Source: Anthoceros angustus
Lineage: Eukaryota > Plantae > Anthocerotophyta
Length of the DNA stretch: 64,000 bases
NCBI GenBank assembly: GCA_010909165.1
Contig: MU008162.1
Span: 1,922,001 to 1,986,000 of the forward strand
Direction of reading: 5' to 3'
Position numbers and translations under genes: made by a program. The notes beneath the pieces were generated by a model. That model saw nothing but the letters and a program-made list of their open reading frames with translations, was not told where the DNA came from and searched no databases. Numbering within the stretch: position 1 is the stretch's first letter; the number at the start of each line of letters is the position of its first letter. Below, one piece after another: positions 22,308 through 59,488 of this stretch.

Positions 22308-23561
22308 TAATTAGCTTATTTATCTGTAATTAGCCTATTAATCCTATTTATCAGCTGATTGTACATACGAATATACGGATACCTCATAGGATTCCCGCTA
22401 CGTGGCCGTATATGACTATGGTGGCTTTGGCTTTGAGGCTGTTCCTTGTGGATGATGTGAGTGTCAGATGTGAGTGGCCAGCTCTATGTCGCTTGTTTCA
22501 AAATGCCTTAACGAAATTTGATCTTCGTGAGCTTCAAAAACTGTTGTTTTTTTTAGTTGATTAGACCACGTATTCACTCCTACTTAATTTAGAAGAGCCT
22601 GAAAGATTTTACAGTAGAAGAGATGACCAAGCATGAGGCCTTGGAGACCCTTACAATTCCATTGGGGCTGAGATCATATATCTGGCAACCCCTAACCTAA
22701 GGGCCTCTTAAAACCAATCTTTTATTGCGAGCGAGACAGCAGAGATCATATATGAGGCGATCCCGAGGTCTTACCTTCGCAAGGACAAGCTTCCCCATTT
22801 CACTACATCCTACACTACTTTTAGCCTGCCTAACAAAACCATGTGTATTTTCTACTGTTTGTATTGTATTAGTTAAATATTTTTTATCCATAAGTAACTA
22901 AAACTTTACTACATAAATTGATAAGTTGAGCATGGTCCGACAAGCGAAACTAGTGGTTTCTTGACCACCATCATATTTCACAAAATAAGTTTAAATCATA
23001 TACAATTTATTGAATAAGTAGAGATGGTTGAACCAATTAACCAGCAAGTAAGAATCACCTTGTGAATTCACTGGAAATCAAGGTAATATTTTTTGTACTC
23101 ATGAATATTACATAAAATTTAGTTACCAAATATGATATATTTAATTATCTTGTGTCATATGATAAATATGCGGTTAGGATTTGAAATTTGTTAGGAGATA
23201 AAATCTTGAAAAATACTTGTTGTACCGTCTTTCTTTGAATTCTTGTCTATGTGATAACATGCGACTCAAGTTGCATTAGCTGAACTATTTCATAGTAGAC
23301 TCCAATAAATTTCTTCTTCACCTTATAGTGATCCAGAAAGGCCTATTTTGATCATCTGTCTCACATGGAACTGCAATCATATGGCCTCGTCCGATGTAGC
23401 CATATATCAACACTGTGGTTAAAGAATGAATTGGTTTAACTCCCCTAAAGGACCAATGTCGAAGACAATCAGTGTATACATTGAGAATAATGTGTTCAAC
23501 TATGAAACTATGATAATGCAGTTGGTTACTCATGCAATTTGATGCATTAATCTTCTTTAAT

Positions 23562-23809
23562 GTAGTATGGAGGAGCAATCATCATTATTGAGGTAGTATG
23601 GAGGAGCAATCATCATTATTGAGGTAGTATGGAGGAGCAATCATCATTATTGAGGTAGTATGGAGGAGCAATCATCATTATTGAGGTAGTATGGAGGAGC
23701 AATCATCATTATTGAGGTAGTATGGAGGAGCAATCATCATTATTGAGGTAGTATGGAGGAGCAATCATCATTATTGAGGTAGTATGGAGGAGCAATCATC
23801 ATTATTGAG
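23562..23809 (+). repeat. 31-bp minisatellite, 8 perfect copies
   Basis: Unit GTAGTATGGAGGAGCAATCATCATTATTGAG x8. Confidence 0.97.
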
Positions 23810-25339
23810 GTAGGTAGTATGGAGGGGTACATATCTAAGAGTTCAAAATCTAGGAGTTTGAGGCCCATTTTAATGGGGCCAACTTCCCTCGTTGAAGAAT
23901 CCTTTTGAGTTGAGACTAATATTGAATGATTTTGTCAAGGCAATGCTCTGCCTTCTCCTTTTTCCGCTAACTATGCACTTGCAACATAAAGATATATTCA
24001 TTTATGTTACAAGGCATAGGCTAAGGGACCTGTATGTAATAATCAGAGATAGGTAATCCCCTCTAGTTAGAATTGCATATGCGGAAGCGATTGCATCTAA
24101 GATGCTTTCTTAGCTATTGATTAAGGTGGGTCAAAGGTAGGCCTTAAATAGCGATGTACGAAGGGGTGTGTCCTGCTAATTAACAAACTGCACTTTATAG
24201 CTAGGTCTAGTTAGACTAACCAACGTGATACAGAACCACATGGTCTACCTTATTTCTAACTCTCCCTCTTAGACACGTGCAGGTTGCTATGTCTTGAAAG
24301 CTTCAGAAAGCAAAAGGAGATCACCACAGTTGAAGACAAACTTCAATCATCTTCAAATCCGCTATCACCCAAAGTCAGTCGCACTTCCTCTCGCTTAACG
24401 TGTAGCCTACGGAAACTCATGGAGAAGAGCACTACCCTTATGACCAGAAGAGAAGCGTGGTATCAAATTTGAACTCCAACTCAAGTGACGGAACAAGTAT
24501 GTGAGCTCACCACCAAATGAGTGACTTGTCTAATGTCACATAATTACTACAATCCACTAGTCCAAGCCCTTCTCTGTGGAAGTAGTGTTTGAACTTGGGC
24601 AAGAACTTTGTCAACACGTTAGCAGTATTGTTGTCAGTAGGTACATATTGTACCTTGACTATACCACTATCAGTAGCATCACGAACACAATGATGTTGAA
24701 TCTCTTTGTGCTTCATGCATGCATGGAAGACGGGGTTAGCAACTAGAGCATGCTGACATGTTATCACAATTAAAAACTATTGGCCCTGTCTGGTTCATGC
24801 CCAGATTTTCGCATAACTTTCGCTCTCACTTAGCCTCCTTAGTGGCTTCTGTAAGTGCCTTGTATTCTGATTCTTTTGAAGATAATGAAATAGCTGCCTG
24901 TTTACAGCAAGACTAATTCTCTAACGTGGATCCAGCTAGGAAGAAATAAGCAGAGATACTCTTTAGGGTATCAGCATCTGAAGCCCAATCAGCATCTACA
25001 AAGCACGTAAGTAGAAGATGCTTATTCCCACAAGGTTAGTAGTATAGGCCAAAGTTCGGTGTACCCTTGAGGTGCCGCATTATACGCTTAAGAGCAATCC
25101 ATTGATCTTTGCCTGGATTCTCGGAGAACTGTATAATGTTCAGTATTGACTATTTGGAGATGTCTGGTCTCGTCTGATTGCTGAGAAACATAAGTATACC
25201 CACTCTCATGCAATAGGGAATATTCTCCATCTCCTTTTTGTCCTGTTCTGATTGTGGACATGATTTGGAGGAAAGCTTCACACCAACGACACCAGGAGTG
25301 GTAGCTACTCGAGCATTTTCCATGTTGAAGCATTTGAGC

Positions 25340-28300
25340 ATACGAGCGACATATCTGCCTTGATGTAAATAAATACCCTCGTATTGTCTCTATGTACATG
25401 CATACCAAAGATATACTTAACATTGCCAAGGTCCTTCATCTCGAATTCCTTGCTAAGATCAACTTTAATCTTGTTTATATGTTATTCCCTTGAATGACTA
25501 AGTCATCAATGTATAATTCAACAAGCACAAGTGAGCTATCCTTACGTAGCACGTAGATGTTAGAGTTAGCTTACCAATTTGCTTAAGATAGGCATCTATC
25601 TTTTCATACCACAAGTGTGGGCTTTGCCTAAGTCCATAGATGGAGCAGTTTAACATACGTACTTTATGTGGAACTTCTTGTCTTTATGGTCTTCAGGTTC
25701 ATCCATGTAGATCTCCTCCTTGAGATACTTTAAAGAAATTTTGTGCACACGTCAAGCTCGTAGATCTCCAAGTTAAGTTCTATACATAATGCTAGAAGCA
25801 TCCTGACGGAAGCAGCTTTGAAGATAGGAGAGTAGATGTGGGAGGGAAAACCCCGGGGCTTCCGAGGCTTCCCCCTCTAGCGGCCACACTTATCCCACTG
25901 TCGCTTCGTACGTCGGGTTTCGTCCCATGAGACTTGTGTGAAAGTTCGAGGCCTCGCGATAACCGATCGCTATTTGCAGAGACACAACTTCTCAGCCTTC
26001 TAAACGAGCAAGGCGCCCTCTACTCACCCTCTTACAGCATGCCCACTTGTGCCTCGAAAACTACCAATCGACCTACAACGACAACACAACACACCAGGTG
26101 TCCCGCCTAGACGAGGAGTTCATCACGGCGCCTGTGGACCCCTCGATCCACACCGCACCTCTTCCCCACTTTTAAGACCACTCTCTCCACCTGTGAGCGC
26201 CTTTACTTGCATTTGGGATTCGTCCCTTAGGCTCGCCTGTGGCCTTCCGCCAACGCCTACCTATTCTCCTCTACTCATCTCCTCATCCTCTTCCTCCTAT
26301 TCTAACCTCGCCTGGCTTCACTGCTCGACCGCCTCACGGCTACAACCGCCTGGGGTCGGCCTCCACCGGCAAGTTCTTCCTTGGGTCGGTTGCTATGAGT
26401 TTGACACCTGAGCCAGAACCTGTGGAGTCCTCGAAGGAACTTTCGGCTTGAGGGTAGACCATGTGAATTCCCGTAGTCTACCCTCAGCCGAAAGTCTCGG
26501 CACCACACATCCAAAGCAAAGCAATTTCACAGCAACCATTCACAAGGGGAGCAACTCGTTTAGGCACTTGCAGGGCCTTACCTTAGTGTGCACTCTGTAG
26601 ATTAGAACATGAAGTTCTAGATCTGCAAAACAAACAAAACAAAAATGAATTTGGGCCTCTTTAACAGGTCAGCCATCCCAACAGAGATCCGCCCCTAGAA
26701 AGCATAACTCTGGAGTTTCGATGGAAGGTGTGCTACCAACCAAGCCTCTACTCTGGCACGCTACATATCGAAAAGTTTTAAGATATGAAGTGTTGCACGC
26801 TTTAAATATGGGGTCTCTCTGGGGAGAGGCACACGGCCCCTCTCCTTCCTCCTTTCATGTTCTTCGTGAGGATTTTTGCACCTTCCTCTCGGATTCAATG
26901 GCGAGAAACAGGCATTTCACTGCCCAATCTTCTCGGTTCCTTGAGGCGCATCTGCCTAGGAATTCTCGACAAGGTCCTCACCGATGTATGGCAATTTATG
27001 GCTGGAGTTCTACACCAAGATGGGCTCAAGCACGGGATTTGGGGATTGAGGTTCTGTTGACATTTGAACTCTGAGCGACATATACGCCTTGATGTAAATA
27101 AATACCTAAGATATTGTCTCTATGTACATGCATACATACCAAAGATATACTTAACATTGCCAAGGTCCTTCATCCAAATTCCTTGCTAAGATCAACTTCA
27201 TCTTGTTTATATATTTATTCCTTGGACTAAGTCATCAATGTATAATTCAACAAGCACAAATGTGAGCTATCCTTCATTACGTAGATGTTAGGAGTTAGCT
27301 TACCAATTTTGCTTAAGATGGGCATCTATCTTTTCATACAGCCCACACTGTGGGCTTTGCACTAAGTCCATAGATTGGAGCGAGTTTAACATACGTACTT
27401 TATGTAGAACTTCTTGTCTTTATGGTCTTGAGGTTCATCCATGTAGATCCTCCTTGAGATACTTTAAAGAAATTTTGTGCACACGTCAAGCTCGTAGATC
27501 TCCAAGTTAAGTTCTATACATAATGCTAGAAGCATCGTGAGCGGCTTTGAAGATAGAGTAGATGTGGGAGGAAAACCAGGCAAGGGCTTCCCCTCTAGCG
27601 GCCACACTTATCCCTGTGACAATGCGTTGGGTTTGCGTCCCATGAGACTTGTGAAGGATTCGAGGCCTCACGCGATAACCGTCGCCATTTGCGAGACACA
27701 ACTTCTCGACCTTCTAAGCAGCAGGCGCCCTCTACTCACCCTCTTACAGCCAGTGCGCACTTGCCTTGCTCGAAAACTACCAATCCCGACCACCATGCGA
27801 TAACACAGTGCGGGTCACCTTTGGCCCGAGGTCTATCACCAGGGACACGATCCACCTGCAATTCGTCCCTACTTTTAAGACCACTCTTCTCCACTCGAGG
27901 GGCTCTTTTACTTGCAGTTGGGATTCGTCCCTTAGGCTCTGTGGCCTTCCCTAACACTACACTCTATTCCTCCTCATCTCCTCATCCTCTTCCTCCTATT
28001 CTAACCTCGATTGGCTTCTTGACTCGCCCTTACGGCCTGGCACAGGTCGGCCTCCACCGGCAAGTTCTTCCTTGGGTCGGTTACTATGAGTTTGACACGG
28101 GCGAGAACCTCCGGTCCCTTGAGAACTTTCGGCGGGTGAACTCGGGAATTCCACATGGTCTACCCTCAAGCCGAAAGTCTGACCACCACCACATCCAAAG
28201 CAAGCAATTTCACAGCACCATTCACAAGGGGGCAGCTCGTTTAGGCACTTGCAGGGCCTTACCTATGCACTCTGTGGATTAGAACATGAAGTTCTAGATG

Positions 28301-28690
28301 CACCGAGAAACAAACAAAACAAAAATGAATTTGGGCCTCTTTGCATGACCATCCCTAGCGGAGATCCGCCCTAGAAAGCATAACTGGGTTTCGATAAAGG
28401 TGTGCTACCAACCAAGCCTACTGATACGCTACGCTACATGTAGTTTTAAGAATGGACCTTTAAATATGGGGTCTCTGGGAGAGGCACAGCCCCTCTCCTT
28501 CCTCCTTTCATGTTCTTCGTGAGGATTTTTGCACCTTCCTCTCGGATTCAATGGCAGAAAGTGGCATTTCAGCCCAATCTTCGGTTCCTTGGTATACGAG
28601 CACACAGAATTCTCGACAAGGTCCTCATGTATGCCAATTGTAACAGGTTCTACACCAAGATGGGCTCAGCACGGGATTTGGGGATTGAGG
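25340..28690. repeat. Staggered tandem duplication (~25340-27075 and ~27075-28690), indel-dominated
   Basis: The copia RT and its junction with the nested element are repeated in the same order with small indels. Confidence 0.8.
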
Positions 28691-31600
28691 TTCTCTTGGC
28701 ATCTTCTTAGGTGGCTCCAATTCTGGCCCGAAATTTCAAGTGTCAAGTCCTGTTATCACTTAACATGGGTGGTCAAGATGATGACACGAGGCGCCTTGCT
28801 ATGTGTGCGTGTGACTTTCTTGTGACGGTAGGCCGCGCCACAATCCGTGTCGTTGTAGGAAGGAGTTCGTTCCCAAAGGAATGAGACTCCGTTTCGTTCA
28901 GCGATTCTCGTCTTACTGCGTCACTGGTCCCGCACACACTCTTAGTTCACGTCTAACTACTACAAACACCGAGCCGGTATGGCCAAGCGTTTGAGGACCC
29001 GTTCGCGTCCGTTCGTTCGTCTCTCACCTCTCGTCCTCCTCTCCCTCACTACACTTATCGGTCTTAAGGGAAGGCAGCGCGGGTTACAGTCCGGACCTCC
29101 TCGCGTTCCAGGCCTCTCGTCCAGCCCCTCAGTCCCTCGGCTCACGTTCGGTCCGTTCGGCGGGCGCGGCTCTGCAGCGAGCAGGTCCCATCACCCTTCC
29201 TGCACACACCACAACACGTTAGGTCCGTCACGGGATCGATCCCTGTCGTGCACCTTTCGGTGACTCGGGACTCACGTTATCAAGAAGACACACAAGGTCT
29301 GCAAGAACGCGCATCAACACCAAGGAAAAGATGATTTATCTGTGGCAGCCCCACTCTTATACTACGCCTGGTCGGCCTTTATTACACCCCTATTCCGAGC
29401 CGACGGCCACCAAGATGCCCTAATCGCCGCCTACCATCCTATTTCCTCCCCTATCTCCTTCACGGCGGAAGGTCCCGGTTCCGCCTTGGGATTGGTGGTC
29501 CAATCTCCGCTCGACAATTGCGACCCAATCGGATGATCCGCGAGGCGGACCCTCCTTTCCCGAATCTCGTTGTTACACGGCGGCCTCGACGACCGCCACC
29601 ACAAACGCCATCCTCTCGGCCTTCCTGTGGTCCTCCTGGGGCCACCGTCGCTCCCTAGCGTAAGTCGGGGCTCCTCATCGCCGAGTCCCGACTCGAGAGA
29701 ACCCAAGGGTCTATTTCCGAGTTCGGACCTCGTGGTCCAGATGACACGGGTTCCGATCCCAAGCTCCGACTCTTCCCGTGGACCTCAGATCGCTAGGTCC
29801 TCCTCCTTACCCCCGACCCTTGTCTTGGTTCGGCTTGGCTCTCCGCACCCCGCAGCCCTCACCCCTTCCGGATCGGTGGTGGTGAACTTACCTTGGGGTC
29901 CGCCAAGGCCCCGCCTCCTCTGGGCTCCTCCTCACGCTGTTGCCCAAACAGGCCCCTAGGGTCCCCTGCCCCTCGTGCCCTTCTTCCCTCCGAGCCTTCC
30001 TGGGTCCGTATTGCTGCCGAGAGGCCTCTACCGCCTGAGCTGTGGTAATAGGCAAAGTCCGAATCCACTTGCCGGATTGCCTCTTCCACGCCCGGAGCAC
30101 CCGATACTCCCTTCGCCATAGGTGCTCCGGAGCCGAGCCGTCCCGCTTGTTGCTCCACCTCCCGCCAAGTTTGATAGCCGAGCCGGGCCGCCGCGAGGCC
30201 GCTGCGCCGGCCACCTCCGCACCGCCGTTGCTCCACTTGCTCAACTCCTCCGCCCGCCCGCCTTGTCCATTCCGCCGTAACTCCGCCATCTCCCGCCTGC
30301 ACGGCCGCAACACGCTGCATCGCGGGCTTCACCTGTGCCTTTTCCATCTCGGCGACGCCCCGCCTCGCTCCATCGCCTCATCGACTGGCCGTGCAGCCGA
30401 GTTTATTTCCTGCCGCCGACCATGTCCCGCACTACCATTCCTCTCACGATAGTTTGAGTCAGCCCAAAGTCTCCTTGCGGTCCTCCATCTCCCGCTGCTT
30501 CCACCTCCCGAGAGTCCGAGGTCCTCCATCTCCTGTCAACTTCTTGGCCTGGCCGGTCCGGCTTGCTCCGCCACCTCCGCCTCCATCTTCGTGCAGCCGA
30601 GGCGCCTATCTCCCGTCAAGTCCGGATTCTCCCATTGAGAATTCCTTGCCGCCTCCGACGCTGCCTTGAGTTGTAACCCAAGGTGTCCTTGCTGCCTCCA
30701 ACTCCCCGCCGCCTCCTTCTACCTCCTGCATACCGAGGTCCCCGATTTCCGGCCTCTGTTTCGCCAGACGGCCTGCGCTTGTTCACGCCACCGCTCGCCT
30801 TCGATTGGCCGTGGCTCTCGCCGCCTCCACCGGCCCGATCACGCCGATAGTGATCGCGATCGGCCTCGCCGTGGCCTCCGCCTCCTGGCCACCTTCACCG
30901 AGCCTCCAGCCTTGGCTCGTCCACGGCCGCCTCCGCCAGTCCTGCGCCTGCTCGCTTGCGCCCGGCGCCCGCCTCCGCCTACGCCCGCAGAGGTCCTCCG
31001 CCCGCTGGGCCTCCTTGGTCTCCTCACCGCCTCTCCTCCACTGAAGGAATTTGGTCCGGCCCTGCGGATGGACCAGACCTCCTCTCGCCTCCCGCTTCTC
31101 TCAATCCGCCGAGAGCTTCGCCTTCCTTCGCCTGGCCCTCCAACCGCCTCCCGGAGGAGTACCATGCGCCCGGTGGCTTCTACCTCCGGGTCTTCGCCAT
31201 CCCGCAGACCCTGTGAGCATGTCCATGACGGTAGCTGGACCCGCCGTGTTTCTTCCACCCGCCGTGAGGCTCCCACAAAGTCCGTAGCGGGAGCCGATCT
31301 CACGGTCCGCCAAGGACCTCCATACCGTGTCCGAGTAAGTCCGACTGGGTTCTCTCGGACCCAATCAGACCCTTAGGTCCCGAGGCCGAGCCCGAGCTTC
31401 CTCCTTGGCCCTTTGGTCGAGCCCTTCTCCGCCTCTTTTCTCCGGGCTCGGAGGAGGTGAGGGAGTCCGGAGCAAGCCTTTTGCCCCTTCCGCCGGGCGA
31501 TGACCGGCTCGTGCCGCTGCTGTCCTCCGCCTCCTCGGGCCCCTTTCTCGCCTCCCATCGCTTCCTCCGCTTGCACCTGCAAGGTGAGGGTACTGCACCG

Positions 31601-32344
31601 ACCGAGGTGCCGCTGGTAGCCGTGGTCTTGCCTTCGGCTCCCTCCTGTCCGGCTGGGGCCTCACCGAGGGTGGCTTGGCGGGCTGGCCTGGGCCGCCTCG
31701 CCGGATCGGCCGCCTGGGGCACAGGAGGAGGGAAGCGGAATTTCTTCCCATACTGGGTGGAGGGGGTCCGCTCCACGATGGAGTCCGGAATCCTCCCGCC
31801 GCCCTCCTCCCGAGTCCGCTTGGCTGACGATCGGCCTCCCTCCTTGCCCGCCTCCACTTCCCAGGCCTCCCCTTTCCCGAGCGCCTCAAGCCTCCTTCCT
31901 TGAGGAGTCAAATGCCCCCATACATGGATCGTATGGGGATGATGGCGAAGGCTTCTGGCCCCGAGCTATGAGCCTCGCTAAACCGCGAAATAATCCTTCC
32001 TCACCCGCCTTCTTCCTCCGCAGCGCATGCGTGAATACTATCAGATTATCACCAAGGTGATCCACCTTGGTGAGTAGGTTCCAGTGACAATGATCCGGCC
32101 ACCGCCTTACTCGACCGTCCAACAGCCTGATATCGCCCAACCGCAGGTCCTCAGCCCCTGTGCCTCAAGATCGCCGCGTGGTCGGGCCCTATCTTCCCTT
32201 CGCCTTGAGGGGCCCGCACCACCCCCCTCTTCCTTTGGGCGGTGTAGGCCGCCTCACCTCCAAGGTCCATCGCTTGGTCCTCCCGAGGTTCTTGGACCGC
32301 ACCTCCTTATTGACCGCCAAGATTTTCCGGCGAACTCTGACCAG

Positions 32345-35300
32345 AGTGACACTATCAAATGTCCGCACTATCCGAACACATCCAAATGCCACTCCCGCAC
32401 CACCCCTCCGCCTCGGAGCCTGTGGCCCAAAGTCCGGATAGCGCCGTCACAATGTTGCGCCCACAAGGTTCCATGGCTCCCAAACTTCCGCAGGCTTTTT
32501 GGGTGCCATCGCCTTCTCCTCCCTTGGTTGCTGTAGCCGCTTGTCGGAGACCGCTGGCACGTTGCGCCGCCGCTCACGCCCGACCTCAACGGTGAGCCGC
32601 CAAGACGCCCGAGTGTCCCACGAGATACCGCCAGAGAGCCGGATCGCGCAAGAGATCGCGAGAATTGTCTCGAGGTCACCGAATGACCTTCCTTCGCCGC
32701 CGCGCCGGAGTAACTGGGCGGGAGGGCGCCCCGTCTGAATCGCCAGGTCTCGCATGGCTTATTCTCGACCTTACGCCCGCTTACCGCCTTACGCCGCTGC
32801 ACGCCCACGCCGCAGCCGGGCGTGAATACCGCTATAACGGCCTCGCAAGGTTACGGCCCCTGCCAACAGCGTCTGCCCACTGTGGTCACCCACGCGCCGC
32901 CTCGTCCGCTCCTACGGCTCAACTCCCGAGTTACTTTCGGCGACTTATCCCGCCTGGTCTCGAGTGGGTCCGACTTATCCTGCTACTGTGGCGCCTACCA
33001 TAGTAGGTCCGGCCGCCTCACTCCGATCCGAGTATACTCCGAGTGCCGCCCGAGTGCTATCCATGCTTATTTCCCTTTTCGCCTCATTTTATCCTTTACT
33101 CCTACAAAAACAAAACCCTACCTATTTTCTAACCCCTGTGGAAGTCGTAGTCCACACTATGATTAGCACCTCGTCACAATCCACTATTCTTCGGCATTGC
33201 CCAAAAGGCCTGTATGTGATTTTCCCTTTGAGAGCTCAATCGCCCAATTCTCTCAAGAAGGAGTGCATCATAGCATTGGAGGTTGGAGGATCACGCCGCT
33301 TAGCGCTACCGAACGACCGCCAAGACGAGCACCTTTGGGCTGTGGAGGACGACCACTAGGGACATGTTCGCAGGCCAACAGCTGTGAGTCAAGCGCCGCT
33401 TCGCAAACAACAACTTACGCTTTTTCTCCCATGAGGGACGGCCCAAGCAACCCGCTTTTCAGCACTGCTTTCAAACCGGTTCTCCAAGCCGGTTCACATT
33501 TGAAGACCTTGAGGTCCTCAAGGTTTTCCACCATCACGTTATCCGCCAACCCCACCATCTTTGATTTGCCTCGTGCTCGGTTGGACATATTATCCATTTT
33601 AGCGCGGATCCTCCTATCGATCTCAAGATTGCGACTCCGGATTTGGTTAACACCTCTCAAACCTTCGATCCAAAGATCTTTCTTGTGGGATCACTGAGAA
33701 CAACACAATATATTTGGTGGACCTTGCATTTTGTCACGATTAGGAAAGCTCGAGATAGTGCAAGCTCAACAGGATCCGGGTTTGGTCTAAGAACTTTGGG
33801 TGGTCGTTGACTGAAGGGGTATTATTGCCTCCAAAGATTCAATAAAGATTGGCGGCATCTTATTCAATAAAGACTAGCGAGATATCAATTTGATATCTCA
33901 TCCTTAATTCTAATGCTTGTTTCGGCAGTGTCATAACTCTTCGTCGGTCGGTTCGATTTAAGCGCCATTTTTGAAGATGGCGAGTCCTACTCCTCCTCCA
34001 CCACAACCCGGCCCAAAACAACCAAAAGATCCGACACTATCGAATGTCCGCACTATCCGAACACATCCAAATGCCACTCCCGCACCACCCTCCCGCCTCG
34101 GAGCCGTGGCCCAAAGTCCGGATAGCGCCGAGTCACAATGTTGCGCCCACAGGTTCCATGGCTCCCAAACTTCCGCAGTTTTTGGGTGCCATCGCCTCCT
34201 CCTTGTCAGCCGCCGGAGATCACGCGGCACGCCGCTCCGCTCACCAACGGTGAGCCAAGACGCCGAGTGTCCCACGAGATACCGCCAGAGAGCCGGATCA
34301 TGAGCGCAAGAGATCGCGAGAATTGTCTCGAGGTCACAGCGAAATGACCTTCCCTTCGGCCGCCTTCGGAGTAACCACGGAGGGCGCTTCCTCGTCTGTG
34401 AATCGCGAGGTCCGCATGGCTTATTTCACCTTACGCCCGCTTACTCGCCTTACGCCGCACTGTTTTACGCCGCCGGCAGCGCGCGTGAATACCGCTATAA
34501 CGGCCTCGCAAGGTTACGGCCTGCCACTGCATGCCCGTTCTCCACTCGTGGTCCCACGTGGCGCCGCCCGTCCGCTCACCAACTCCCGAGTTACTTTCGG
34601 CGATTTATCCCGCCTCGGGTCCGGAGTGGGTCCGACTTATCCTGCTACTGCGGGCGCCTACCATAGGTCTGCACGCTCTCACTCCGAGTCCGGAGTATAC
34701 CCGAGTGCCGTCCGAGTGCTATCCATGCTTATTTCCCCCTTTTTCGCCTCATTTTATCCTTCACTCCCACAAAAAAACAAAACCCTACCTATTTTCTAAC
34801 CCCCCAGGGAAGTCCGTAGTCCACACTATGATTGGTAGCACCTCGCTCACCAATCCACTATTCTTTCAGTGCAGATTGCCCAAAAGGCCTAGACAGATCT
34901 TTCCCTTTGAGAGCTCAATTTACTGCCCAATTCTCTCAAGAAGGAGTGCAGATCATAGCATTGGAGGTTGGAGGATCCGCCGTAGGCTGCAAATACCGAT
35001 CACAAGACGAGCACCTTTGGGCGCCATGGAGGACGACTCACGCCACGACGCTGTCACATTGGCCACAAGCGCCGCCTCACAAACAACAACTTACGTTGCC
35101 TTTTCTCCCATGAGGGGGGACGGGCCTGAACCGGTGCAAACCCGGCTTTTTCAGGCACCTGTTTCAAACCGGTTCTCTCTGAAGCCGGTTCACATTTGAA
35201 GACCTTGGAGGTCCCTCCGGGTTTTCCACCATCACGTTATCCGGCTAACACTCCACCATCTTTGATTTGCCTCGTGCTCCAGGTTGGACATATTATCCAT

Positions 35301-48514: not shown

Positions 48515-49101
48515 CTACTCTTGAATCTCAACCGTGCCATCGTCAATCTCGCTTTGTAGGTCTTTGGGGTCCTTTCCATCAACAGTGCATCCTACAGACA
48601 CACAGGTCCCCAATATCTCCTTCACCGTGCCCGCCAGCTGCTTGGCCATGGACCTACGGGCCATGATTTTGGCTATCTCAATCACGTCATCAAGGCTGAT
48701 GTTCCCGTTGTGCTTTATGTTCTTCACCTTCTTCCTGTCCCGTTCGGGCTCCTTGAGAGCCTTGATGACAAGAGCGGCTGCACTGGGGACCACGGATACC
48801 TTGGCTTGCCTGTTCTGCACCGTCAGCTTCACAGTCACCCGCAGACCCTTCCAATCCTTGGCCGTCTCCTTGGCGATGTCCTCTCCCACCTTCTTAGGGG
48901 ACAAACCTAGAGGCCCGATCTTCGGGGCCAACGACGAGGCCGCTCCCACCTGCACAGCAAATCCCTGTCAGCACACCCTCACGTTCTTCCACAACCAACA
49001 CACACAGGCACACAATGCGGACATGATCAAAACCCTACCTCGCCGCCAGTGACCCGCACGTGCACCTCCACCACCTGCGAGGGGTCTAGTTTGGGCGGCA
49101 T
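48515..49101 (-). CDS. RPL12: 60S ribosomal protein L12 (uL11), left copy; exons 49101-49039 and 48949-48515
   Basis: [21 protein letters not shown]|[29 protein letters not shown]...[23 protein letters not shown]; GT-AG intron. Confidence 0.97.
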
Positions 49102-49258
49102 GACTGTTGTTCAGAGGCTCCTCCAGGTTTCGGCAGTCCGACTGAAGGGCCATTTCAACTAACAGGAGGCCGTTTAAATTGAAACCCATAATTCGGGCTG
49201 GCTTGCGTCTGATATTCAATCGTGACGGCTTCGATCTTCGGACCGGGAACTGGATAGG

Positions 49259-50440
49259 ATGGGAGAGCGGGATTATTCTTCCGACAGATCGCGATGGTAG
49301 AGCGGGGAAGAATATCCGGCTCAGAGCGATCCCATGTGTCGTTTGTATTATGAGATGCGGAGATGGACCCCTTCGGAGGATCTGTGACAAAGGGTGCAGC
49401 TCTGGTGCTGGCAAGCCCTGAGCAACCAGTTGTTTCGATCCGGACCTGGTTCGGGATGCTGGTCCTCTCAGGCGCTGCTTCATCAAGGGTTGTCCCACGG
49501 GATGCTCACTTGCCGCCACATATGTAGTGACATGTTGAAGAGTTTGGAGTCAAGTGGATGGCGTAGTCTTATTATTGCTAACGTGCTATGCTAATATTTT
49601 GTAGGTCCAGTTTGAATATGGATGTGGAGAAGAAGCCCATGACCTCATGATGCATCTAGGCTGGGATGAGGCTTTTTTTTCTGTGTCACTTGGCTTGTCT
49701 TCACATCTACAATTGGGATCTTAGGTTTGACTTCTAGCTAACTGGAAGCTTAAAATTCTGACACAGGAACAATTGCTGACTTTATATTTTGTTGGATCGG
49801 AAACTGTGGAATTGCGAGGAAGTTTATTGCTGGATGGTGTAGGATCGAGCTTTCTTTCCTCAGTGCTACAAGGGGTTTCTGTATTTGCATGAAGGACATT
49901 GGGTGGTGAGGTCAGATCATCAATATGGAGCCCGATTTTCTTGCTTATCAGTCATCATCCTGACCTAGTTCACTCGCAGTACGTTTTATCTTTCGTGTCA
50001 GGTTACTCTTTAATTTTTTTTCAGCGTTTTATCATGGGTATGATTCTTCAAAAGTTTTTAGGCCTACTTTATTTGCAAATATGTTATCTCGCCAAGGTGA
50101 TCCTGCAGAGCGTTAATCACATGAGGCCATACCATGAACCACCTTTGTGGCGATGTCTCGGAGGTAAGCAATAGCAATGCTAGTATTCTTTTCGGAATGG
50201 GTGGCTTGCTATACTTTGGTGCGTGGTCTGACGTGAAGTGTGATTGTTGAGACTCTTTTGTTGCTTCACGCTGTCTCTAGGAGTACATCTTTCATAGGCC
50301 TGCAAGTTAAGGGTTTGGAAAGCTTAAAAGTGAAGCCAATAGAGGTATGGCGTGGCTGCCTAAATCACATCGCTCAGATTCATCCATGGAACGTAGTTAA
50401 AGGCTATTGCAAAATCATGTTTACCTATAGAAGAAAAATG
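49259..50440 (+). pseudogene. SEN2: SEN2 tRNA-splicing endonuclease pseudogene (inverted copy)
   Basis: Homologous to 50655-51857, but with TAG at codon 14 (49298-49300), further stops and frameshifts, and a damaged acceptor (GCAA instead of GCAG). Confidence 0.85.
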
Positions 50441-50654
50441 TAAACAAAATAGTAGTGTGCAGAATTGTAGGTAGTGATACCATCTTTGTTTATTGTCATG
50501 TACTGGTACTATACCATCTTCAGTTATGTTCCAAAATTAACTATCACTTTATTTATAGTCATATATAGATATAACACCATCTCCATTTATAGTCAATCTA
50601 TTATACACATACACACTACCTACCATCTTGCACACTACTATCTTGTCTACATTT

Positions 50655-51857
50655 TCACTCTGATGGTGAACCTGATTTTGCTACCACTTTTAACTCTGTA
50701 GTCGGGTCTGAATCTGAGCGATGTGATTCAGGCAACCACCGCTGTACCTCCACGGGCTTCACTTCTAAGCTTTCCAAGTCCTGAACTTGTAGGCCTTTGA
50801 AAGATGTACTTCTAGGAACAACATGAAGCAATAGAAGAGTCTGAACGACCACGCTTCCCATCAGACTATGCACTAGAGTATAGCAAACCACCCATTCCGA
50901 ACAGAACACTAGCTTTGTTGTTGTGTACCTTGGAGACACTGCCACAAAGCCGATTCATGGCATGGACGTCCGCCCAATTAGCAACTCTTTGTCTTGGTTC
51001 ACCTTCCGGCACAACGATGACAGCATACCTGCAAATAAAGTAGACCAGAAGACTTTTGAAGAATCATATCCATGATTAGACGATGACAAAAAATTAAAGA
51101 ATTGTCTGGCATGAGGGATAAAACGCACTGCGAGTGAACCAGCTCAGGATGATGACGATAAGCAAGAAAGTCGGCTCCATATTGATGACCGGACCTCACC
51201 ACCCAGTGTCGTTCACGCAAGTACAAAAACCCCTTGTACCGCTGAGGAAAGAAAGCTCGATCCTGCACCATCCAGCTCCAAACTTCTTCACAACTCAGCA
51301 GATTCCGACCCTGCACCATATATAATGTCAGCAATTGCGCTAGTTTCGGAAGTTTAAGCTTCCAGTTAGTTATAAATCGAACCTCGGATCCCCAGCTGTA
51401 AAGGTGAAGACAAGCCAAGTGATGACAAAGAAAAAAGGCCTCTTCCAAGCCTAGATGCATCATCAGGCCATTAGTCTTCTCTTTCTCCACATCCAATATT
51501 CGAATTGGACCTACAAAATATTAGCATACTACGTTAGCGATGATAAGACTGTGCCACCCACTGGCCTCCAAACTCCTCAACATGTCACTACATACGTGGC
51601 GGCAAGTGAGCATCCCGTGGGACAACCCTTGAGGCCGCAGAAGCTGGGAGGACCAACATCCCGAAGCATGCTCGGCTCAAAACAGCTGCTTGCTCAGGGC
51701 TTGCCATCACCAGAGCTGCACCCTTTGCCACATGCCCTTCCATAGGGGTCCATCTCCGCATCTCATCATACAACCGAGACATGGGATCCTCCTGGGCCGC
51801 AGATTCTCCTCCGCTCTTCCATCTCGATCTGTCGCAAGGATGGTTCTGCTCTTCCAT
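50655..51857 (-). CDS. SEN2: tRNA-splicing endonuclease subunit SEN2-like, apparently intact, 5 exons
   Basis: RWKSGG..EDPMS..LSRACFG; LGLEEAFFL; YKGFLYLRERHWVVRSGHQYGADFLAYRHHPELVHSQ|YAVIVV..NWADVHAMNRLCGSVSK|TLLLLHV..VQRWLPE. Confidence 0.9.
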
Positions 51858-51923
51858 CCTATCTAATTCCGGGTCCGAATCTCGAAGCCGTCGCAATTGA
51901 ACCTCACAGGCAAGTCGGCCCGA

Positions 51924-52195
51924 TTTAGGGTTTCAACATAAACGGCCTCCTTTCATTTGAAATGCGAGCATCAAAGGGTGTAAAGTCTCTTGGCGCTGCC
52001 CGATCAGGCTCACCAGAGCTTTCAGAGATGGGAGTTATCATCAGTGACCAGTTCTCTTATGGAAACCAGCAGGGCTCAGCGGACGTTCGGAAGAGAGGCT
52101 GGAGGAGCTTCTAAACAGTAGTCATGCCGCCCAAACTAGACCCTTCGCCGGTGGTGGAAGTGTACGTGCGGGCAAGTCGGTCCAAATTAGGGTTT
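51924..52195. promoter_or_regulatory. Duplicated telo-box promoter module between SEN2 and RPL12
   Basis: TTAGGGTTT at 51925-51933 and 52187-52195, each within a repeated GGCAAGTCGG..TTAGGGTTTCAA.ATAAACGGCCTCCTTTCA block. Confidence 0.65.
52124..52171 (+). pseudogene. Extra truncated copy of RPL12 exon 1
   Basis: [16 protein letters not shown], after which the sequence jumps back to promoter sequence. Confidence 0.85.
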
Positions 52196-52275
52196 CAATA
52201 TAAACGGCCTCCTTTCAACTGAAGTAGCCCTTTAGTAGGACTGCCGAAACCTGGAGGAGCCTTTGAGCAGCAGTC

Positions 52276-52864
52276 ATGCCGCCCAAACTAGACCCCTCGC
52301 AGGTGGTGGAGGTGTACGTGCGGGTCACTGGCGGCGAGGTAGGGGTTTGATCATGTCCGCATTGTGTGCCTGTGTGTGTGTTGGTTGTGGAAGAACGTGA
52401 GGGTGTGCTGACAGGGATTTGCTGTGCAGGTGGGAGCGGCCTCGTCGTTGGCCCCGAAGATCGGGCCTCTAGGTTTGTCTCCTAAGAAGGTGGGAGAGGA
52501 CATCGCCAAGGAGACGGCCAAGGATTGGAAGGGTCTGCGGGTGACTGTGAAGCTGACGGTGCAGAACAGGCAAGCCAAGGTATCCGTGGTCCCCAGTGCA
52601 GCCGCTCTTGTCATCAAGGCTCTCAAGGAGCCCGAGCGGGACAGGAAGAAGGTGAAGAACATAAAGCACAACGGGAACATCAGCCTTGATGACGTGATTG
52701 AGATAGCCAAAATCATGGCCCATAGGTCCATGGCCAAGCAGCTGGCGGGCACGGTGAAGGAGATATTGGGGACCTGTGTGTCTGTAGGATGCTCTGTTGA
52801 TGGAAAGGACCCCAAAGACCTACAAAGCGAGATTGACGATGGCACGGTTGAGATTCAAGAGTAG
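52276..52864 (+). CDS. RPL12: 60S ribosomal protein L12 (uL11), right copy; exons 52276-52338 and 52430-52864
   Basis: [21 protein letters not shown]|[12 protein letters not shown]...; near-identical to the left copy. Confidence 0.97.
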
Positions 52865-53469
52865 GGTAGGAAGTACACAAGTAGCTCTGCGGCTGCAGCA
52901 CCTGCTGAGGGTGTGTTGTCACTACGTTCTTTTGCGATGCAATAATTTTTTGACAGCGATTGTATTTGGTGCCCCGTGCGAAGCATTGTGTATCGCTTTG
53001 TCTGTGCTTTTGTGCTCTTTGTTTGCTTCTCTTTGGAACCGTCATTCGCGGACTAGCATGTCTGTAAGTGACACAGCAGGGAATACCGCGATGAGAGAAA
53101 TAGGTCCGTACAAGACCGGCACAGGTGGACAGGCCGTTCCCGAACATGGAATTTTTCTTCCTTGCAGGTGGTAGCTCGTTTCTCGCTCGGTGTGTAAAGG
53201 CTCTGGTAGCAAGTTGAGCTCTTCACGCAAGATGACAGGTGGTAGCTCGTTGCTCACTCGGTCCTGGAGGCACTGGTATCAAGTTGAGCTCTTCATCCAA
53301 GATGACAGGTGAGTTGCTGTGGTTTCTTCAATTGGCACAAACTATCCAGATTGCAGTATCATACCTTATTGTTAATTTCTTCGTTTCCAATGGTAGTCTT
53401 GGCTTTCCTGAAACCGCACCCACTGAGCAGCAAGTCGTTTTGACAGCACGGGATTTCGAGGCATGGACA

Positions 53470-55250
53470 CCGAACCGTCTTTGCTCGCACAATTGAAGCG
53501 GCAGGTGGCGGTATCATTTTGATCCTGCTCAATGAGCAGTTTGGACAGGATGCTAATGGTCATCAGTAGTACGCCTGGGCTTAAGGCTCTGCATGTCTCT
53601 TGCTCACCGTGGCATTCATGTCTACGGTGCACATGCTAGGTTCCGTACGGAGGTATATGCATATGCGACTGGCCGGTTCAATGAGCAATCTAGTCTCTCA
53701 CTGACATCTTGCCAGACTTGCAGAGTTATGGACGAAGAGCTCAACATTTCCCCAATGTCCTCCACACATCCGCTGTATTGAACCTCTTGCCACTCTGGAG
53801 GTATGTTTATTTATGAATGTGGTGGCGATTCTGGACTGTAATGATGCCGGGTGCTGCTTTCTGTCCCTCTATTATGTGATGGCTCGGCAACATGCAGGGA
53901 GAGCAGGGTCGTACATAGGCAAAGAAGGAGTCGGTGAGAGACGCATCCATAAGGACCTCTGGTCAGCAAGTACCGAACAGAGATCAGGTAAAACTGTTTG
54001 GGTTTTGCTCCTTATGTGTGGTTAGAGTCTGATTTCAGTATGAACCCTGTCAATCTCCCTTCACAAGCAAGCACCTGTCAACTCGAAGACTGCTTTATGT
54101 AAGGAGACTGACACGAGGTGCCCAACTGTTTGTGACAGGCAACCGCAGTTGTAACATTTCTTGACGCAATCTCGGAGATCTGACTTTCAGAAGAACGGTT
54201 GGAAAGTCTGCTGCACTAGGAGTTTCCGTGGCTGGGGCAGCTGCTCTCTATTCTAGCATGTTACCTGGTGGGGAATTGCACGTATGAGATATCCAGCTAC
54301 TGTATCTTTCCGCTGGAACAGCTACTCGCACGTTTTTGTCACAGCTCCTAGCCCAGAGATGTTGAAGACAAGTCTTTGAAATTATTTTCTAGAGCTGTGA
54401 TGCCCTTGAGTATAAGGTAAAGGATTATAGGTATTCAAAGCTCCCAAATTAGTGATCGTTGTTGTGGTGGTATACCGAGGATCCGATGGGTTTCTAGCTC
54501 TGCACGCAGCTTCTAATAGTCCGCCCTTGGATTTTCTAGGAGCACATTGACTTGTACAATTTGGTGGAAGTACGAAAGCTCTTCGACAAGGCCTTCGGCC
54601 AGAGTTTTTGTATTTCGTCAACACTGCCAGACAATTAAGTATGTGCTAGAAACAACTTCTTCCAGGTGTTGGTACTCTGCTCACAAGTGAGTCTGCTGAG
54701 CCATCGACCTAAGGAAATCGCTTTGTACTGTACATCCAGCCGCAGGATTATGCGAAGTTATCTCAGGCAGACTTGTTAGTAGAAGATGAAACTCCAGCTC
54801 ATGTTGCTATCTCTGGTTCCGATGAAGCCTTCCTAAAGGCAGGGCAAAAGGTCTCTACAAGTGGTCTTCATCAGCATCAATCCAGTGCTGACAAGCCATT
54901 TCGTGAAAAAGAAAATGGAGGAAGACCTCGAAGCAAGAAAAATAGAGATCAGGGTACTCAAGGGCTTGACCTTGTTGGTACCCAAGGTGGAGATCGGCGA
55001 GCTTTATTGTGTCAGCAGCAGGATGTTGAAGGGGCCTTGCCTGTAACCCACATATAACTCATTTGTCTCCAGGAGCTTAGCTCCATCCTCTGCTCACAGG
55101 TTTGTCCTACAATGTGTGATGGGTCAATTCCATTCCTTGTCTGCTTCAAAGCTTCGAAGTGTACTTTTCTCAGAGGCTCAAGTACTCTTCTTCTGATTCC
55201 AGAGAGCACTATCCTGAAGACTGTCTCATCTGGGAAGGCGTCTTAAGGGA
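53470..55250 (+). pseudogene. Unidentified degenerate multi-exon gene remnant (right arm copy)
   Basis: Mirror of 46100-47900 with shared stops. Confidence 0.3.
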
Positions 55251-58200
55251 ACAAATACAGTAAGCACAAACTTATGTCTCGATGACGAGGCTGCCGTGGT
55301 CCTGGATGCAATTAGATGTGTGGATTCCTGACTACAGAGAACCTGCATGAATGTGATCACAAGCTGCATGCGGAAAGTGACAGTCAAGAGGTAGTACACG
55401 CAACTGGGTGACGAGGTCCCGGCCCAGCCCGCTGGCTGCCTCGTGGGAGGAATTACGGTTGCTCTCGCGGTGGCGGGACCCGGCCAGCCGGTAACAGGAG
55501 TTAGACTTGTGAAAGGACGATCAATTATGCCTGATTGGTCGCTCATCATGCATCGTCAAGGCGGCACATGCTCCGCCCACGTAGACCGGACGCGTTCCCC
55601 CGGTCCCCCGGTCCCCGGCTTGGCATCTTCCCCGTTTGCCATTTCCGTACAAATCTCCCTTTTAGCCGCCAAGAATTTGAGAGGTCTCCTAACTTAAATA
55701 GACCAGATTCTGGGACGTTTCAGAAGGTGGATCGTGGAGGTAATCGGAGTTACCATTCCTACGTACGTACGCCTGTACTTACGTAGGAGGAGAGACTTTC
55801 ATGTAAGACGACCACCGGAAAGAGGACGCCGAGGCTGGCCGTTGTTCAGAAATAGCGTTTTTCTTATTAAAAATCTTTTTTTATACAAAGAACTTTATAA
55901 TAATTGATTAGAATATATTGTTTGTTGGGTGAATTTCTTCTTTTGTTCCTATTATCTGTGCATATGTTTTTGTTGGATTTTCTATGCTGCTTAAAAAGAA
56001 GGTGGAGACTTTGTAGATATGCAGAGATGGGGAGTCTCATTTACGTCGGGGGCAATGGGGAACAAACCTCTAGAGGGTATAGAAAAAATAAACAAAGATT
56101 AAAAAAGAAGAATGAAACAAAAGAAACGAGGGCTAAGGTATAAAAAAAATTTAGAGATAAAAGAAAATTAGAAGAGATAGAGATATAAAAAAAGAAATAA
56201 ATATTTTATATAATAAAGATGATAGAAAGATAAATAGAGGTCTTACTTTCATTTGCTTCACGACAGAGATTCGTGGGGGCTAGTCCTCTTTGTAGCTTGT
56301 TCTCCGCTGCCTCGATGTATATGGGACTTCCCACCTCCGCATATTTTTTAAGTCTCCGTGTTCCTCTTTCATTTGCTTCTTCTTCTATCAATAGATATAA
56401 GTGAATGATGATGAATAGATAAAGATCATTAATCATATTCATAATAAATACATTAAAAGAGATTGAAAACAAAAAGATTAGAGGTATAAGAAAAAAAACT
56501 AGAGAAAGGGGGGTTTGTTTGTATGAACTAAATTGTATATAGATCCTTTACCCAAATTAAAATGAATTGAAAATGTATAACCGGGTGCAAAATACTACAA
56601 ACAACTGAATAATCAAAGGGAGACCCCCAAGGACCGCGATAAAATGGAGGACTAAGCTCCATTCCTAAAGACACCTATTGTGATGACAATGTCATCTGCA
56701 AAAAGAATTAGGGCCTGTGTACTATTGAGGATGCATCAACAACGAATTCATGTTATATTGAGGGAAAAAACGATGGGGAAAAGTCCATCCAGCACGGGAC
56801 AATGAAGGTGGACCTCCGGGGTCAAGGTGAAAAAGAGCTACTAAGCCCTTACCTAAAGTTACCTACTGCTCCTAGAACATCATATGCAGGAAGAACAAAT
56901 GGCCTGCAAATGACTGAGGAAGACGAAGAAGCGTCAACAATGTGGACACAAACTATAGTAGTGACTTCATTTCATGCACTCTAGCTGAAAAAACGTACTT
57001 CTGCATCTCTTTGACCTTAATGCATCTTGAAATCTTTGATGAGAGACCCATTCTCTATAATCCAAAAGCAAAATCAGGTCTTGAAAGAGATCATAAAGGT
57101 CACTTTCATTTACTTGCCACTTTCTGTCCTCCCTTGAACTGTGACACGGTAGCCTAGAGTTCATGGTAGCCTAGAGTTCCAACTGTTCATTGAAACGCTA
57201 TGGTTAACCTAAGAATGCCCAACCACTCAAATCGAGTCTTTTTGACTTATGTTCTTTAACATTGTGCACAATTTTTGAATGACACTAGCTTATGTTAAGG
57301 TTTCTATTCATACCAAATTTGGCCCCTTACGATATTTTCATGTTAAAAGAAGACTCAATTCATATACTAACATAGTTAGAAATAAATCAATTATAGGTTA
57401 CTCCTTGGCGCTATCCAATATTTTTTCAATTGGCAACTCGCCTCACAAATCTCATATTTCACATTGTATGGTGTAGTGGGGATTACTTATCTTTGATTAT
57501 TACATACAGATCCTTTAACCTATGCCTTGTAATACAAATGAATATATCTTTATGTTGCTATCTTTATGTTGTAATCGCATAGTTGACGGAAAAAAGAGAA
57601 GTCAGAGCATTGCCTTGACAAATCGTTCAGCATTAGCCTCAACTCAAAAGATTCTTTAAAGAGAGAAGTTGCCTTCATCAAAATGGGCCTCAAACTCCAA
57701 GATTTTGAACTCTTAGATATATACCTCTCCATACTACCTGCCTCAATAATGATGATTGCGCCTCCATACTACCTCAATGACTAGGTATTGCAATGGATGC
57801 CTAAAGACAAAGAATGGTAGGATGACATGTATAAACGGAAGATTAATGCATCAAATTGCATGAGTAACTAACTGCATTATCTACATTGTATCATAGTTGA
57901 ACACATTATTCTCAATGTATACACTGATTGTCTATGACATTGGTCCATCAGGAGAGTTAAAACAATTCATTCTATAACCATAGTGTTAATATATGGCTAC
58001 ACAAATAAGGTGAAGAAGAAATTTATCATAGTCCACTATGAAATGGTTCGGCTAATGCAACTTGAGTCGCATGTTGTCACATTAACATGAATCTAAAGAG
58101 TCTAAAAGAAGACAACTTGACATAAATCTAAAGAGTCTAAAGAAAGACAACTTGAGTCGCATGTTGTCACATTAACATGAAACTAAAGAATCTAAAGAAA

Positions 58201-59488
58201 GATAGTACAACAAGTATTTTTCATGATTTTATCTGCTAACAAATTTCAAATCGTAACCGTATATGTCGTATGACACAAGATAGTTAAAAATATCTATTTG
58301 GTAAGTATATTTTATGTAATATTCCATGAGTACAAAATATATTATATAGATTTTTAATGATAACATAAGATGATTCTTACTTACTGGTTAATTGGTTCAA
58401 CCATGTCTACTTATTCAATAGAGTGCTTATGATTTTAACTTGTTTTGCGAAATAATGATGGTTGTCAAGAAACTACTGGTTTTCTTGGTCGGGTCAGTCA
58501 ATGCTCGACTTATCAATTTATGTGGTAATTTTTATTTACTTTTATATAAATATATTTAATAATATAATAAAAATTATAAAAATACACATGTTTTGTTACG
58601 CAGGGTGAAAGTGGTTTAGGATGTAGTGAAATTTGAAGCTTGTCCTTGCGGAAGGTGAGAGTTCTTGGCTGTAATCTTGAGCCAATGGCATTATGACTTT
58701 TCTTGATGTGATCGGCCACGGTACTGGCCCAATCAGGTCGGCGCAAACGGAATCTGTCAGTAAGCAAAAGCGGGCAACGGAACGGAACGTATCGTGGTTG
58801 GAAACTCGGACGTAAATTTTCGTTTGAGTCGACTCGAGTGCAGCTGCAGCACAGTACGAGCGTTGTGCGTGGAGAGAGGGGCGGTTGGTTTATATTCGAA
58901 GCACAAGGCCGCAGCTGGCTGCTGTGTGCTGTGCTGCGGACTTGTCTGCCTGCCTGCCCGCCTTCCTTGCTCGCGTGAACTCTCACCCTCGGTTTCGCAC
59001 GGAAGACGCCGCCGGACTGCCTGCCGGCAGATGAGCGCAGCGCAGCGAAGCAATGGACTCTGCGTCTCCCTCCCTGCTGCTGGTCCGGACGCTGGTGCGA
59101 GCTGGAGCCCGAGCTGCAGCTGCAGCTGCTGCTTCAGCAGACTTGTGATGTCCTGCGCTCCGGGCGGCGGGAACGGGACGGGGACGGGACGTGAACGGCC
59201 CTCTCTGCTGTCCCTGCTCCCCCTGTCCCTGTCCCTGTCCCAGCTGCTCCTTGCCAGGCGCCTGCTCCTGCTCCCAAGCCTCCTCGCCTTCTCCTTGCAT
59301 TGCCGCCTCTGGAGCTCGTGATGGCAGGCGGAGCGTGGCGCGGGATGTTGCGCTGCGTATGTGAGGTGTGGTTGAAATTGTGATCAATTGGCATTGCGCG
59401 GGGATTGAACGGAGGGAAGGAGATAAGGAAGCGAGGGAGGGAAGGAGGGAAGAGGAAGGATTGTGGTGTTTGATGTTTTTCTGTGGCC

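Follow-up and report, generated by a model that had tools for sequence, protein, structure and literature searches.

Gene-bearing palindromes with arm-to-arm conversion are already known, and the one described here is partly homogenised, partly decayed and carries housekeeping genes. It lies in a stretch of 64,000 nucleotides from the hornwort Anthoceros angustus (GenBank assembly GCA_010909165.1, contig MU008162.1, positions 1,922,001 to 1,986,000 of the forward strand), termed the window below, to which all coordinates refer and in which no N occurs. The locus probably reflects an ancient inverted duplication followed by decay of the tRNA-splicing endonuclease gene SEN2 in one arm, insertion of a long terminal repeat (LTR) retroelement, and recurrent conversion between the arms around RPL12, the gene for ribosomal protein uL11.

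The closest described systems are the palindromes of primate and mouse sex chromosomes (human Y P1-P8 and X; PMC8327919, PMC8600007, bioRxiv 10.1101/800185). As here, they consist of gene-bearing inverted repeats with a spacer, undergo arm-to-arm conversion that leaves their gene copies almost alike, show structural change concentrated at the spacer and inner arms, and persist, in their case for millions of years. In contrast to the present locus, they display >99% identity along arms of 8 kb to 1.45 Mb, have mostly kb-scale spacers, and carry testis-expressed families on sex chromosomes. The hornwort arms are ~99% identical over 3.6 kb of an 8-kb arm and 80-94% identical over the rest, and the genes that they bear (uL11, Sen2) have housekeeping roles. 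Thus, of the features that mark amplicon-type palindromes, the locus possesses arms of at least ~8 kb with a spacer and a divergence pattern indicative of exchange, but not >99% identity along the arms.

Two further natural systems invite comparison. The palindromes of the willow (Salix purpurea) W chromosome (PMC7023750) also are gene-containing plant structures whose conservation has been ascribed to gene conversion, but they are much larger, have arms of high identity and belong to a sex-determining region that does not recombine. The autosomal inverted repeats of Caenorhabditis (Zhao et al. 2007, PMC1803023) likewise are kb-scale, comprise paralogous gene pairs, divergent or convergent, with intergenic DNA, and have a structure that outlasts its sequence, which implies active homogenisation. 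However, the Caenorhabditis repeats are near-perfect along their full length, whereas in the hornwort one gene is dead and only a sub-tract, delimited by insertions, is homogenised. The rule applied below to the stability of the locus derives from yeast assays (Lobachev laboratory, PMC10164571), in which instability is sharply reduced by longer spacers and by divergence of the arms, above all close to the centre. The yeast system employs 0.3-kb Alu repeats in an assay, whereas the hornwort palindrome is a natural 8-kb locus whose centre is at or beyond the thresholds established there. A literature search on hornwort inverted duplications found nothing relevant.

Geometry of the palindrome

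The left half of the region was compared with the right half by an inverted-repeat scan and blastn. The inverted matches formed one collinear series that placed 22769-50476 onto 58660-50614, with a top blastn segment of 7083 bits, and that was broken only at 24065-43955 in the left arm. The left arm comprises 22769-24064 plus 43957-50476 (~7.8 kb with the insertion excluded), the right arm comprises 50614-58660 (8,047 bp), and the central unmatched spacer, 50477-50613, is exactly 137 bp. Both the outer and the inner junctions are sharp, including that at 58660, and self-comparison of the window detected no homology beyond the arms into the flanks. The self-comparison that an earlier note on this DNA had proposed therefore yielded collinear inverted matches along both arms and confirmed the palindrome with a 137-bp spacer that the note had located at 22770-58660. 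The parts of the structure are as follows.

22769-24064: AT-rich outermost segment of the left arm, on the far side of the insertion; Kimura two-parameter distance (K2P) of 0.156 to the right arm, holds the expanded minisatellite
43957-45519: AT-rich outer segment of the left arm between the insertion and the near-identical block, towards which the distance (K) falls, 0.097 then 0.057
45520-49107: near-identical block, left copy; pairs with 55862-52270
50477-50613: spacer; 137 bp, asymmetric, 27% GC
52270-55862: near-identical block, right copy; 3.6 kb
55863-58660: right arm, outer AT-rich part; empty insertion site at ~57474-57476 and unexpanded minisatellite at 57727-57778

In a MAFFT alignment the arms were 92.5% identical over 7,408 aligned positions and differed by 553 substitutions and ten indels of at least 15 bp. 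A minisatellite with a 31-bp unit has 8.1 perfect copies in the left arm (23562-23813) compared to ~1.6 copies in the right arm (57727-57778), in agreement with the expansion in one arm that had been proposed previously. The earlier note also had judged the palindrome to be old, which accords with arms that differ by 1-21% substitutions and many indels. Its further contention that the arms are not a fold-back read artefact was upheld by the same differences, by the minisatellite, and by an LTR element flanked by a target-site duplication (TSD) in one arm.

Chimeric long reads are known to yield palindromes with very short spacers, and the locus might accordingly be a product of assembly, either through a chimeric read that folded back or through haplotypes or paralogous loci wrongly joined in inverted orientation. 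However, the arms of fold-back chimeras are near-identical, whereas those examined here differ by 7.5% overall and by 21% beside the centre, and also are distinguished by the ten larger indels, the 19.9-kb TSD-flanked insertion and the decay of a gene on one side. Allelic haplotypes would neither diverge by 15-20% nor join head-to-head exactly past a stop codon. Moreover, the clean open reading frames (ORFs) nearby, namely those of both RPL12 copies, SEN2 and a 737-aa exon of an RNA-dependent RNA polymerase (RDR) gene, point to good local sequence quality. An artefact of assembly is extremely improbable. Instead, judged from its sequence, the palindrome is a genuine, ancient inverted segmental duplication that bears genes.

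Probable conversion around RPL12 and decay of SEN2

The divergence between the arms is markedly heterogeneous among segments (chi-square 496, p = 3e-107). The K2P values between the arms, by left-arm interval, were as follows.

22769-24065: 0.156
43955-44900: 0.097
44901-45519: 0.057
45520-49107: 0.013
49108-50476: 0.2145

The 3.6-kb block at 45520-49107 contains 47 substitutions in 3,581 aligned sites, corresponding to 98.7% identity, and the inner 1.37 kb of the arms is 81.6% identical. The inner edge of the block is abrupt, lies no more than a few bases from the RPL12 ATG codon, and abuts a 261-bp duplication that is found in the right arm. On the outer side the divergence climbs stepwise and climbs again past the 19.9-kb insertion. 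The genes that lie within and beside the block, with their local rearrangement, are listed below; the spliced models of SEN2 and RPL12 were joined for the reading-frame check, and homology searches were run with single exons.

48515-49101, reverse strand: RPL12, left copy; exon 1 49101-49039, 89-nt intron, exon 2 48949-48518 plus stop codon; 165 aa, intact
52276-52864, forward strand: RPL12, right copy; exon 1 52276-52338, 91-nt intron, exon 2 52430-52861 plus stop codon; 165 aa, intact
51931-52191: tandem duplication of the RPL12 5' region, right arm only; 261 bp, adds another telo-box and, from 52124, a degenerate exon 1 copy
50655-51857, reverse strand: SEN2, right copy; exons 51857-51596, 51510-51383, 51310-51129, 51028-50929 and 50840-50655
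49259-50435, forward strand: SEN2 pseudogene, left copy; stop codons, lost splice sites and frameshifts

Within the block the substitutions are evenly distributed, occurring in the RPL12 exons (5 in 495 bp) and intron as well as in 3 kb that contains no recognisable gene. As this spread encompasses coding and non-coding DNA alike, coding constraint cannot account for the block, but recent non-reciprocal exchange can. The competing proposal that purifying selection or a low local mutation rate, and not exchange, underlies the block gains some weight from the highly conserved RPL12 gene within it and from a GC content above that of the outer arm. However, RPL12 coding sequence occupies just ~0.5 kb of the block, and the intron and the 3 kb that lack a detectable gene or RNA (1.3% different) are as similar between the arms as are the exons (1.0%). 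Furthermore, the jump in K from 0.013 to 0.2 is located a few bases at most from the RPL12 start codon and next to a point at which the arms differ in structure, and the exons of functional SEN2 just outside the block are 13-33% different from the corresponding exons of the pseudogene. Selection or slow mutation is very unlikely to be the explanation. Exchange between the arms is preferred: the block would be the latest arm-to-arm conversion tract, as suggested by the divergence pattern in one sequence, and the graded segments would be successive conversion tracts of different ages that are fenced by structural differences between the arms.

The two RPL12 copies possess open reading frames and GT-AG introns and differ in three amino acids and at two synonymous sites; residue 14, for example, is His in the left copy and Tyr in the right. 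The best match of the RPL12 proteins was to a wheat 80S ribosome chain (4v7e, E = 8e-82), and the copies are about 92-94% identical to plant L12 proteins that carry PF03946 and PF00298. Protein searches with uL11, SEN2 and RDR returned matches in land plants about equally across lineages, and the best database identities (94% for RPL12, 41% for SEN2 and 49% for RDR) similarly were spread evenly over land-plant lineages.

The promoter regions of the RPL12 copies are dissimilar. An exact telo-box is located ~85 bp upstream of the right copy, and the right arm contains two exact telo-boxes (AAACCCTAA) in the bidirectional SEN2/RPL12 promoter, at 51925-51933 and 52187-52195 (reverse strand), because of the 261-bp tandem duplication. 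The left arm has a single telo-box, at 49185-49200, which is broken by a 1-bp insertion (TTATGGGTTT). In view of these differences, the sequences suggest that the two RPL12 copies may differ in expression. Directly downstream of RPL12 in both arms is a tandem repeat of 70 bp in 2.1 copies that are 85% identical (48076-48222 and 53165-53311), which, being present in both arms, is older than the last homogenisation.

SEN2 is arranged head-to-head with RPL12 and is transcribed towards the centre of the palindrome. The right copy specifies 285 aa in five exons in which every intron is GT-AG, and 41 bp separate its stop codon from the spacer-side end of the arm. The protein includes a tRNA_int_endo domain (PF01974, E = 5e-12) and matched human TSEN2 chains with E = 4e-7 and moss and angiosperm Sen2 with E = 1e-17. 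The segment AYRHHPELVHS...CGSVSK aligns with the Tyr, His and Lys motifs of plant Sen2, which we take, from the archaeal and human enzymes, to be the catalytic positions. The right gene is named from its best matches as the catalytic subunit Sen2 of tRNA-splicing endonuclease, with its activity and its separation from paralogous Sen34 as predictions. A metagenome scan with SEN2 exon 3 gave no match.

In the left arm, SEN2 survives only as a dead pseudogene. Exon 1 has a TAG codon after Arg-Trp and a donor site altered from GT to AT, the acceptors of exons 3 and 4 have been lost, and exon 3 contains a further in-frame TAG. Frameshifting indels number at least ten; the copy is frameshifted at the Tyr position, and the catalytic Lys is replaced by Glu. 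The earlier note had described the arms as duplicating RPL12, SEN2 and an additional gene of unknown type. The two RPL12 copies indeed are intact, but the state of the left SEN2 copy means that there is no functional duplicate of SEN2, and the third gene was not substantiated as a gene.

The stretch to which the third gene had been assigned, 45.5-48.4 kb, was examined by several routes. A Pfam search with 20 stop-free ORF pieces from both strands gave nothing better than E = 0.03, Rfam and tRNA scans of the arms produced no match, and the ESM Atlas returned just one low-recognition match of 0.75. RPL12 exon 2 alone had strong three-base periodicity; elsewhere a single weak peak was seen, at 46420-46599. 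The interval 46419-46673 (reverse strand) contains a protein-like open frame of 85 aa with weak three-base periodicity, in which the stretch 'LLVEDETPAHVA' is reminiscent of the DNxPxH motif found in mariner-type transposases. A full HMMER search with this piece recovered only repeat-rich proteins; its top E value, 5.6e-34, results from adding up 18 repeats of a ~26-bit 'DNxPxH' match in a protein with a mariner Transposase_1 fragment. A decayed mariner-like transposase at 46419-46673 was discarded as a candidate, with Pfam blank and no match to PDB chains at E <=10 for two pieces. No transposon-like terminal repeats bound the 3.6-kb block. Thus, the family, Rfam, tRNA, Atlas, HMMER and PDB searches provided no evidence of a gene in this stretch beyond the uncredited likeness to a transposase motif.

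The retroelement in the left arm

The interruption in the left arm coincides with a single large insertion.

24065-43951, reverse strand: LTR-bounded retroelement, left arm only; 19,887 bp, decayed
25323-28702, 32348-37979, 39391-41823 and 43344-43951: tandem-duplicated stretches within the insertion

The LTRs are ~200 bp in length (24065-24264 and 43746-43951), and their K2P is 0.168 over 196 aligned sites. The terminal inverted repeats of the insertion are AGTTAGAA/TTCTAACT, and its ends differ from the canonical TG...CA. The element is flanked by a 5-bp target-site duplication, CCTCT, at 24060-24064 and 43952-43956, and the right arm retains the uninterrupted site as CCACT at ~57474-57476. 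An exact tRNA-iMet-type primer-binding site (PBS), TGGTATCAGAGC, at 43546-43557 (reverse strand) abuts the inner LTR copy; this is the only exact match in the window, and three matches were found when up to one mismatch was allowed compared to 0.25 expected.

The LTR on the PBS side is tandemly duplicated as two 181-bp units that are 100% identical, and the interior of the insertion is rich in tandem duplications with units of 1.2-1.7 kb that are 83-89% identical and very rich in indels. A core of 66% GC at 30-32 kb has no recognisable protein. A copia reverse transcriptase (RT) fragment at ~37427-37594 (forward strand) was detected as a 56-aa match to RVT_2 (E = 7.7e-11) on the strand opposite to the PBS, and a family scan of nine other ORF pieces from the insertion revealed no further protein domains. 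Thus, the insertion has the direct LTRs, the TSD with its empty site, and the PBS of an LTR retrotransposon, but not gag-pol coding capacity. It is an old, dead LTR element that is probably composite, and the missing coding capacity marks it as decayed, non-autonomous or composite. The TSD-flanked retrotransposon in one arm only that had been noticed earlier is borne out by the LTRs, the CCTCT duplication, the PBS, the RT fragment and the empty site in the right arm.

Retroelement-like sequences are also present outside the palindrome. The left flank at 17.6-22.7 kb seems to be made of retroelement remnants, and an ORF at 19215-19646 (reverse strand) resembles a retroviral-type aspartic protease (…LIIGKPWLAKH…).

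Stability, history and significance of the locus

Long inverted repeats tend to be unstable when their spacers are short. In yeast, an increase in spacer length from 12 to 20 bp lowers repeat-induced recombination ~40-fold, instability is lost wholly at 75% homology, and a single mismatch near the centre matters (PMC10164571). The changes seen in primate X palindromes cluster at the spacers and in the inner arms, with stability lowest for small spacers (PMC8327919). In the hornwort palindrome, identity is 73.7% over the first 100 aligned columns from the centre, where the longest perfect match is 13 bp, and 78-80% over the first 200-500 columns, where no perfect match exceeds 20 bp; the ~99% identical blocks are separated by 3,162 bp. 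The earlier note had considered the persistence of the palindrome to be notable because of its short spacer. With inner arms of 74-80% identity and ~99% identical parts so far apart, the locus is at or beyond the yeast thresholds and this argument does not hold: persistence is no paradox because the centre-side ends of the arms are too diverged and the spacer is too long for hairpin instability of the yeast type. Decay at the centre would explain the stability, and the locus would then resemble an end state of the change at spacer and inner arms.

The spacer contains AATAAA twice, on the reverse strand only, which is the SEN2 strand (50489-50494 and 50548-50553), in the position of the right SEN2 terminator. 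It also contains the motif ACCATCT three times, and this motif is present too at the inner end of the right arm. As a single strand, 537 nt across the centre would fold into an imperfect hairpin of considerable length (-131 kcal/mol, z = -20).

It has been proposed that plant MIRNA genes can arise when target genes are duplicated in inverted orientation. By analogy, convergent SEN2 and pseudo-SEN2 might constitute a functional hairpin-RNA locus, a proto-miRNA or siRNA source, in which read-through of the spacer would produce an imperfect hairpin of ~1.2 kb that regulates SEN2 and selection would keep the palindrome. The SEN2 copies do converge, with 137 + 2x41 bp between stop positions, the centre folds strongly as a single strand, and an RNA-dependent RNA polymerase gene follows the right arm.

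59483-63434, forward strand: RDR1/2-like gene; RRM-like N-terminal exon, 737-aa exon with a DLDGD motif, and 263-aa exon

The latter gene begins ~0.8 kb past the arm, with a best identity of 38-49% that is about equal in ferns, mosses, liverworts and seed plants; its proximity may be coincidental. However, the complementarity of the putative hairpin is ~80%, with perfect runs of at most 37 bp and at most 20 bp near the loop, and the two AATAAA motifs in the spacer on the SEN2 strand suggest that transcripts stop before the other arm. A regulatory hairpin-RNA locus is very doubtful as the reason for the maintenance of the palindrome.

The history that is favoured, duplication followed by one-sided decay, insertion and recurrent conversion, may be reconstructed as follows. 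A segment of ~8 kb, containing AT-rich intergenic DNA, 3 kb of uncharacterised DNA, RPL12 and the divergently oriented SEN2, would have been copied in inverted orientation. The turn-around would have been ~40 bp past the SEN2 stop codon, which fits fold-back or template-switch repair, and a single-copy loop of 137 bp that still resembles a SEN2 terminator would have been left behind. The right arm and spacer are weakly suggested to be the original, and the left arm the copy, by the 27% GC content of the spacer, its two AATAAA motifs on the SEN2 strand only, and the ACCATCT motif that it shares with the inner end of the right arm. The left SEN2 copy has since decayed to its present state while the right copy stayed intact, the LTR retroelement has entered the left arm and itself decayed, and indels and the minisatellite expansion have accumulated. 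Gene conversion would repeatedly have re-homogenised the surroundings of RPL12, with a last tract at 45520-49107 whose inner end is at the RPL12 start codon and with older tracts that reach outward no further than the 19.9-kb insertion.

The order that is consistent with the distances is duplication (K of at least 0.21), LTR insertion (K ~0.16-0.17), further proximal exchange, and the last tract (K ~0.013), with the LTR insertion cutting the distal arm off from further exchange. If plant DNA is assumed to change at 5-10e-9 per site per year, a rate that is uncalibrated for the lineage, the distances would date the duplication to roughly 11-21 million years, the insertion to 8-17 million years and the last tract to ~1 million years.

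Several considerations weigh against this reconstruction. That the DNA runs unbroken through the centre and the junctions is taken from the assembly, and the fold-back origin is deduced from the geometry of the locus. The age, the polarity and the direction of conversion are drawn from one sequence. Locally faster mutation or pseudogene decay could partly explain the high divergence beside the centre, rather than a longer time since homogenisation. Finally, the imperfect 537-nt hairpin predicted by folding indicates that the residual potential for secondary structure at the centre is not zero.

A wider proposal is that the locus is the oldest dated case of unusually active fold-back duplication in the genome, that short-spacer palindromes would be a main route to new gene copies, and that the fate of each copy, whether a pair kept by conversion or one-sided decay, would be set gene by gene. 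This proposal is unlikely. Were inverted duplication frequent genome-wide in the lineage, that frequency would be the more important finding.

For annotation of the genome, the region comprises two RPL12 genes that are separable by five coding differences, one functional SEN2 gene with one pseudogene, and an insert of ~20 kb that is a dead retroelement. More generally, two classic fates of duplicate genes are found within a single palindrome, with RPL12 as a near-identical pair versus SEN2 decayed in one arm, and insertions and indels fence the conversion tracts. The locus also would illustrate how a short-spacer palindrome turns harmless, in that divergence at the centre removes the risk of hairpin formation while exchange goes on further out.

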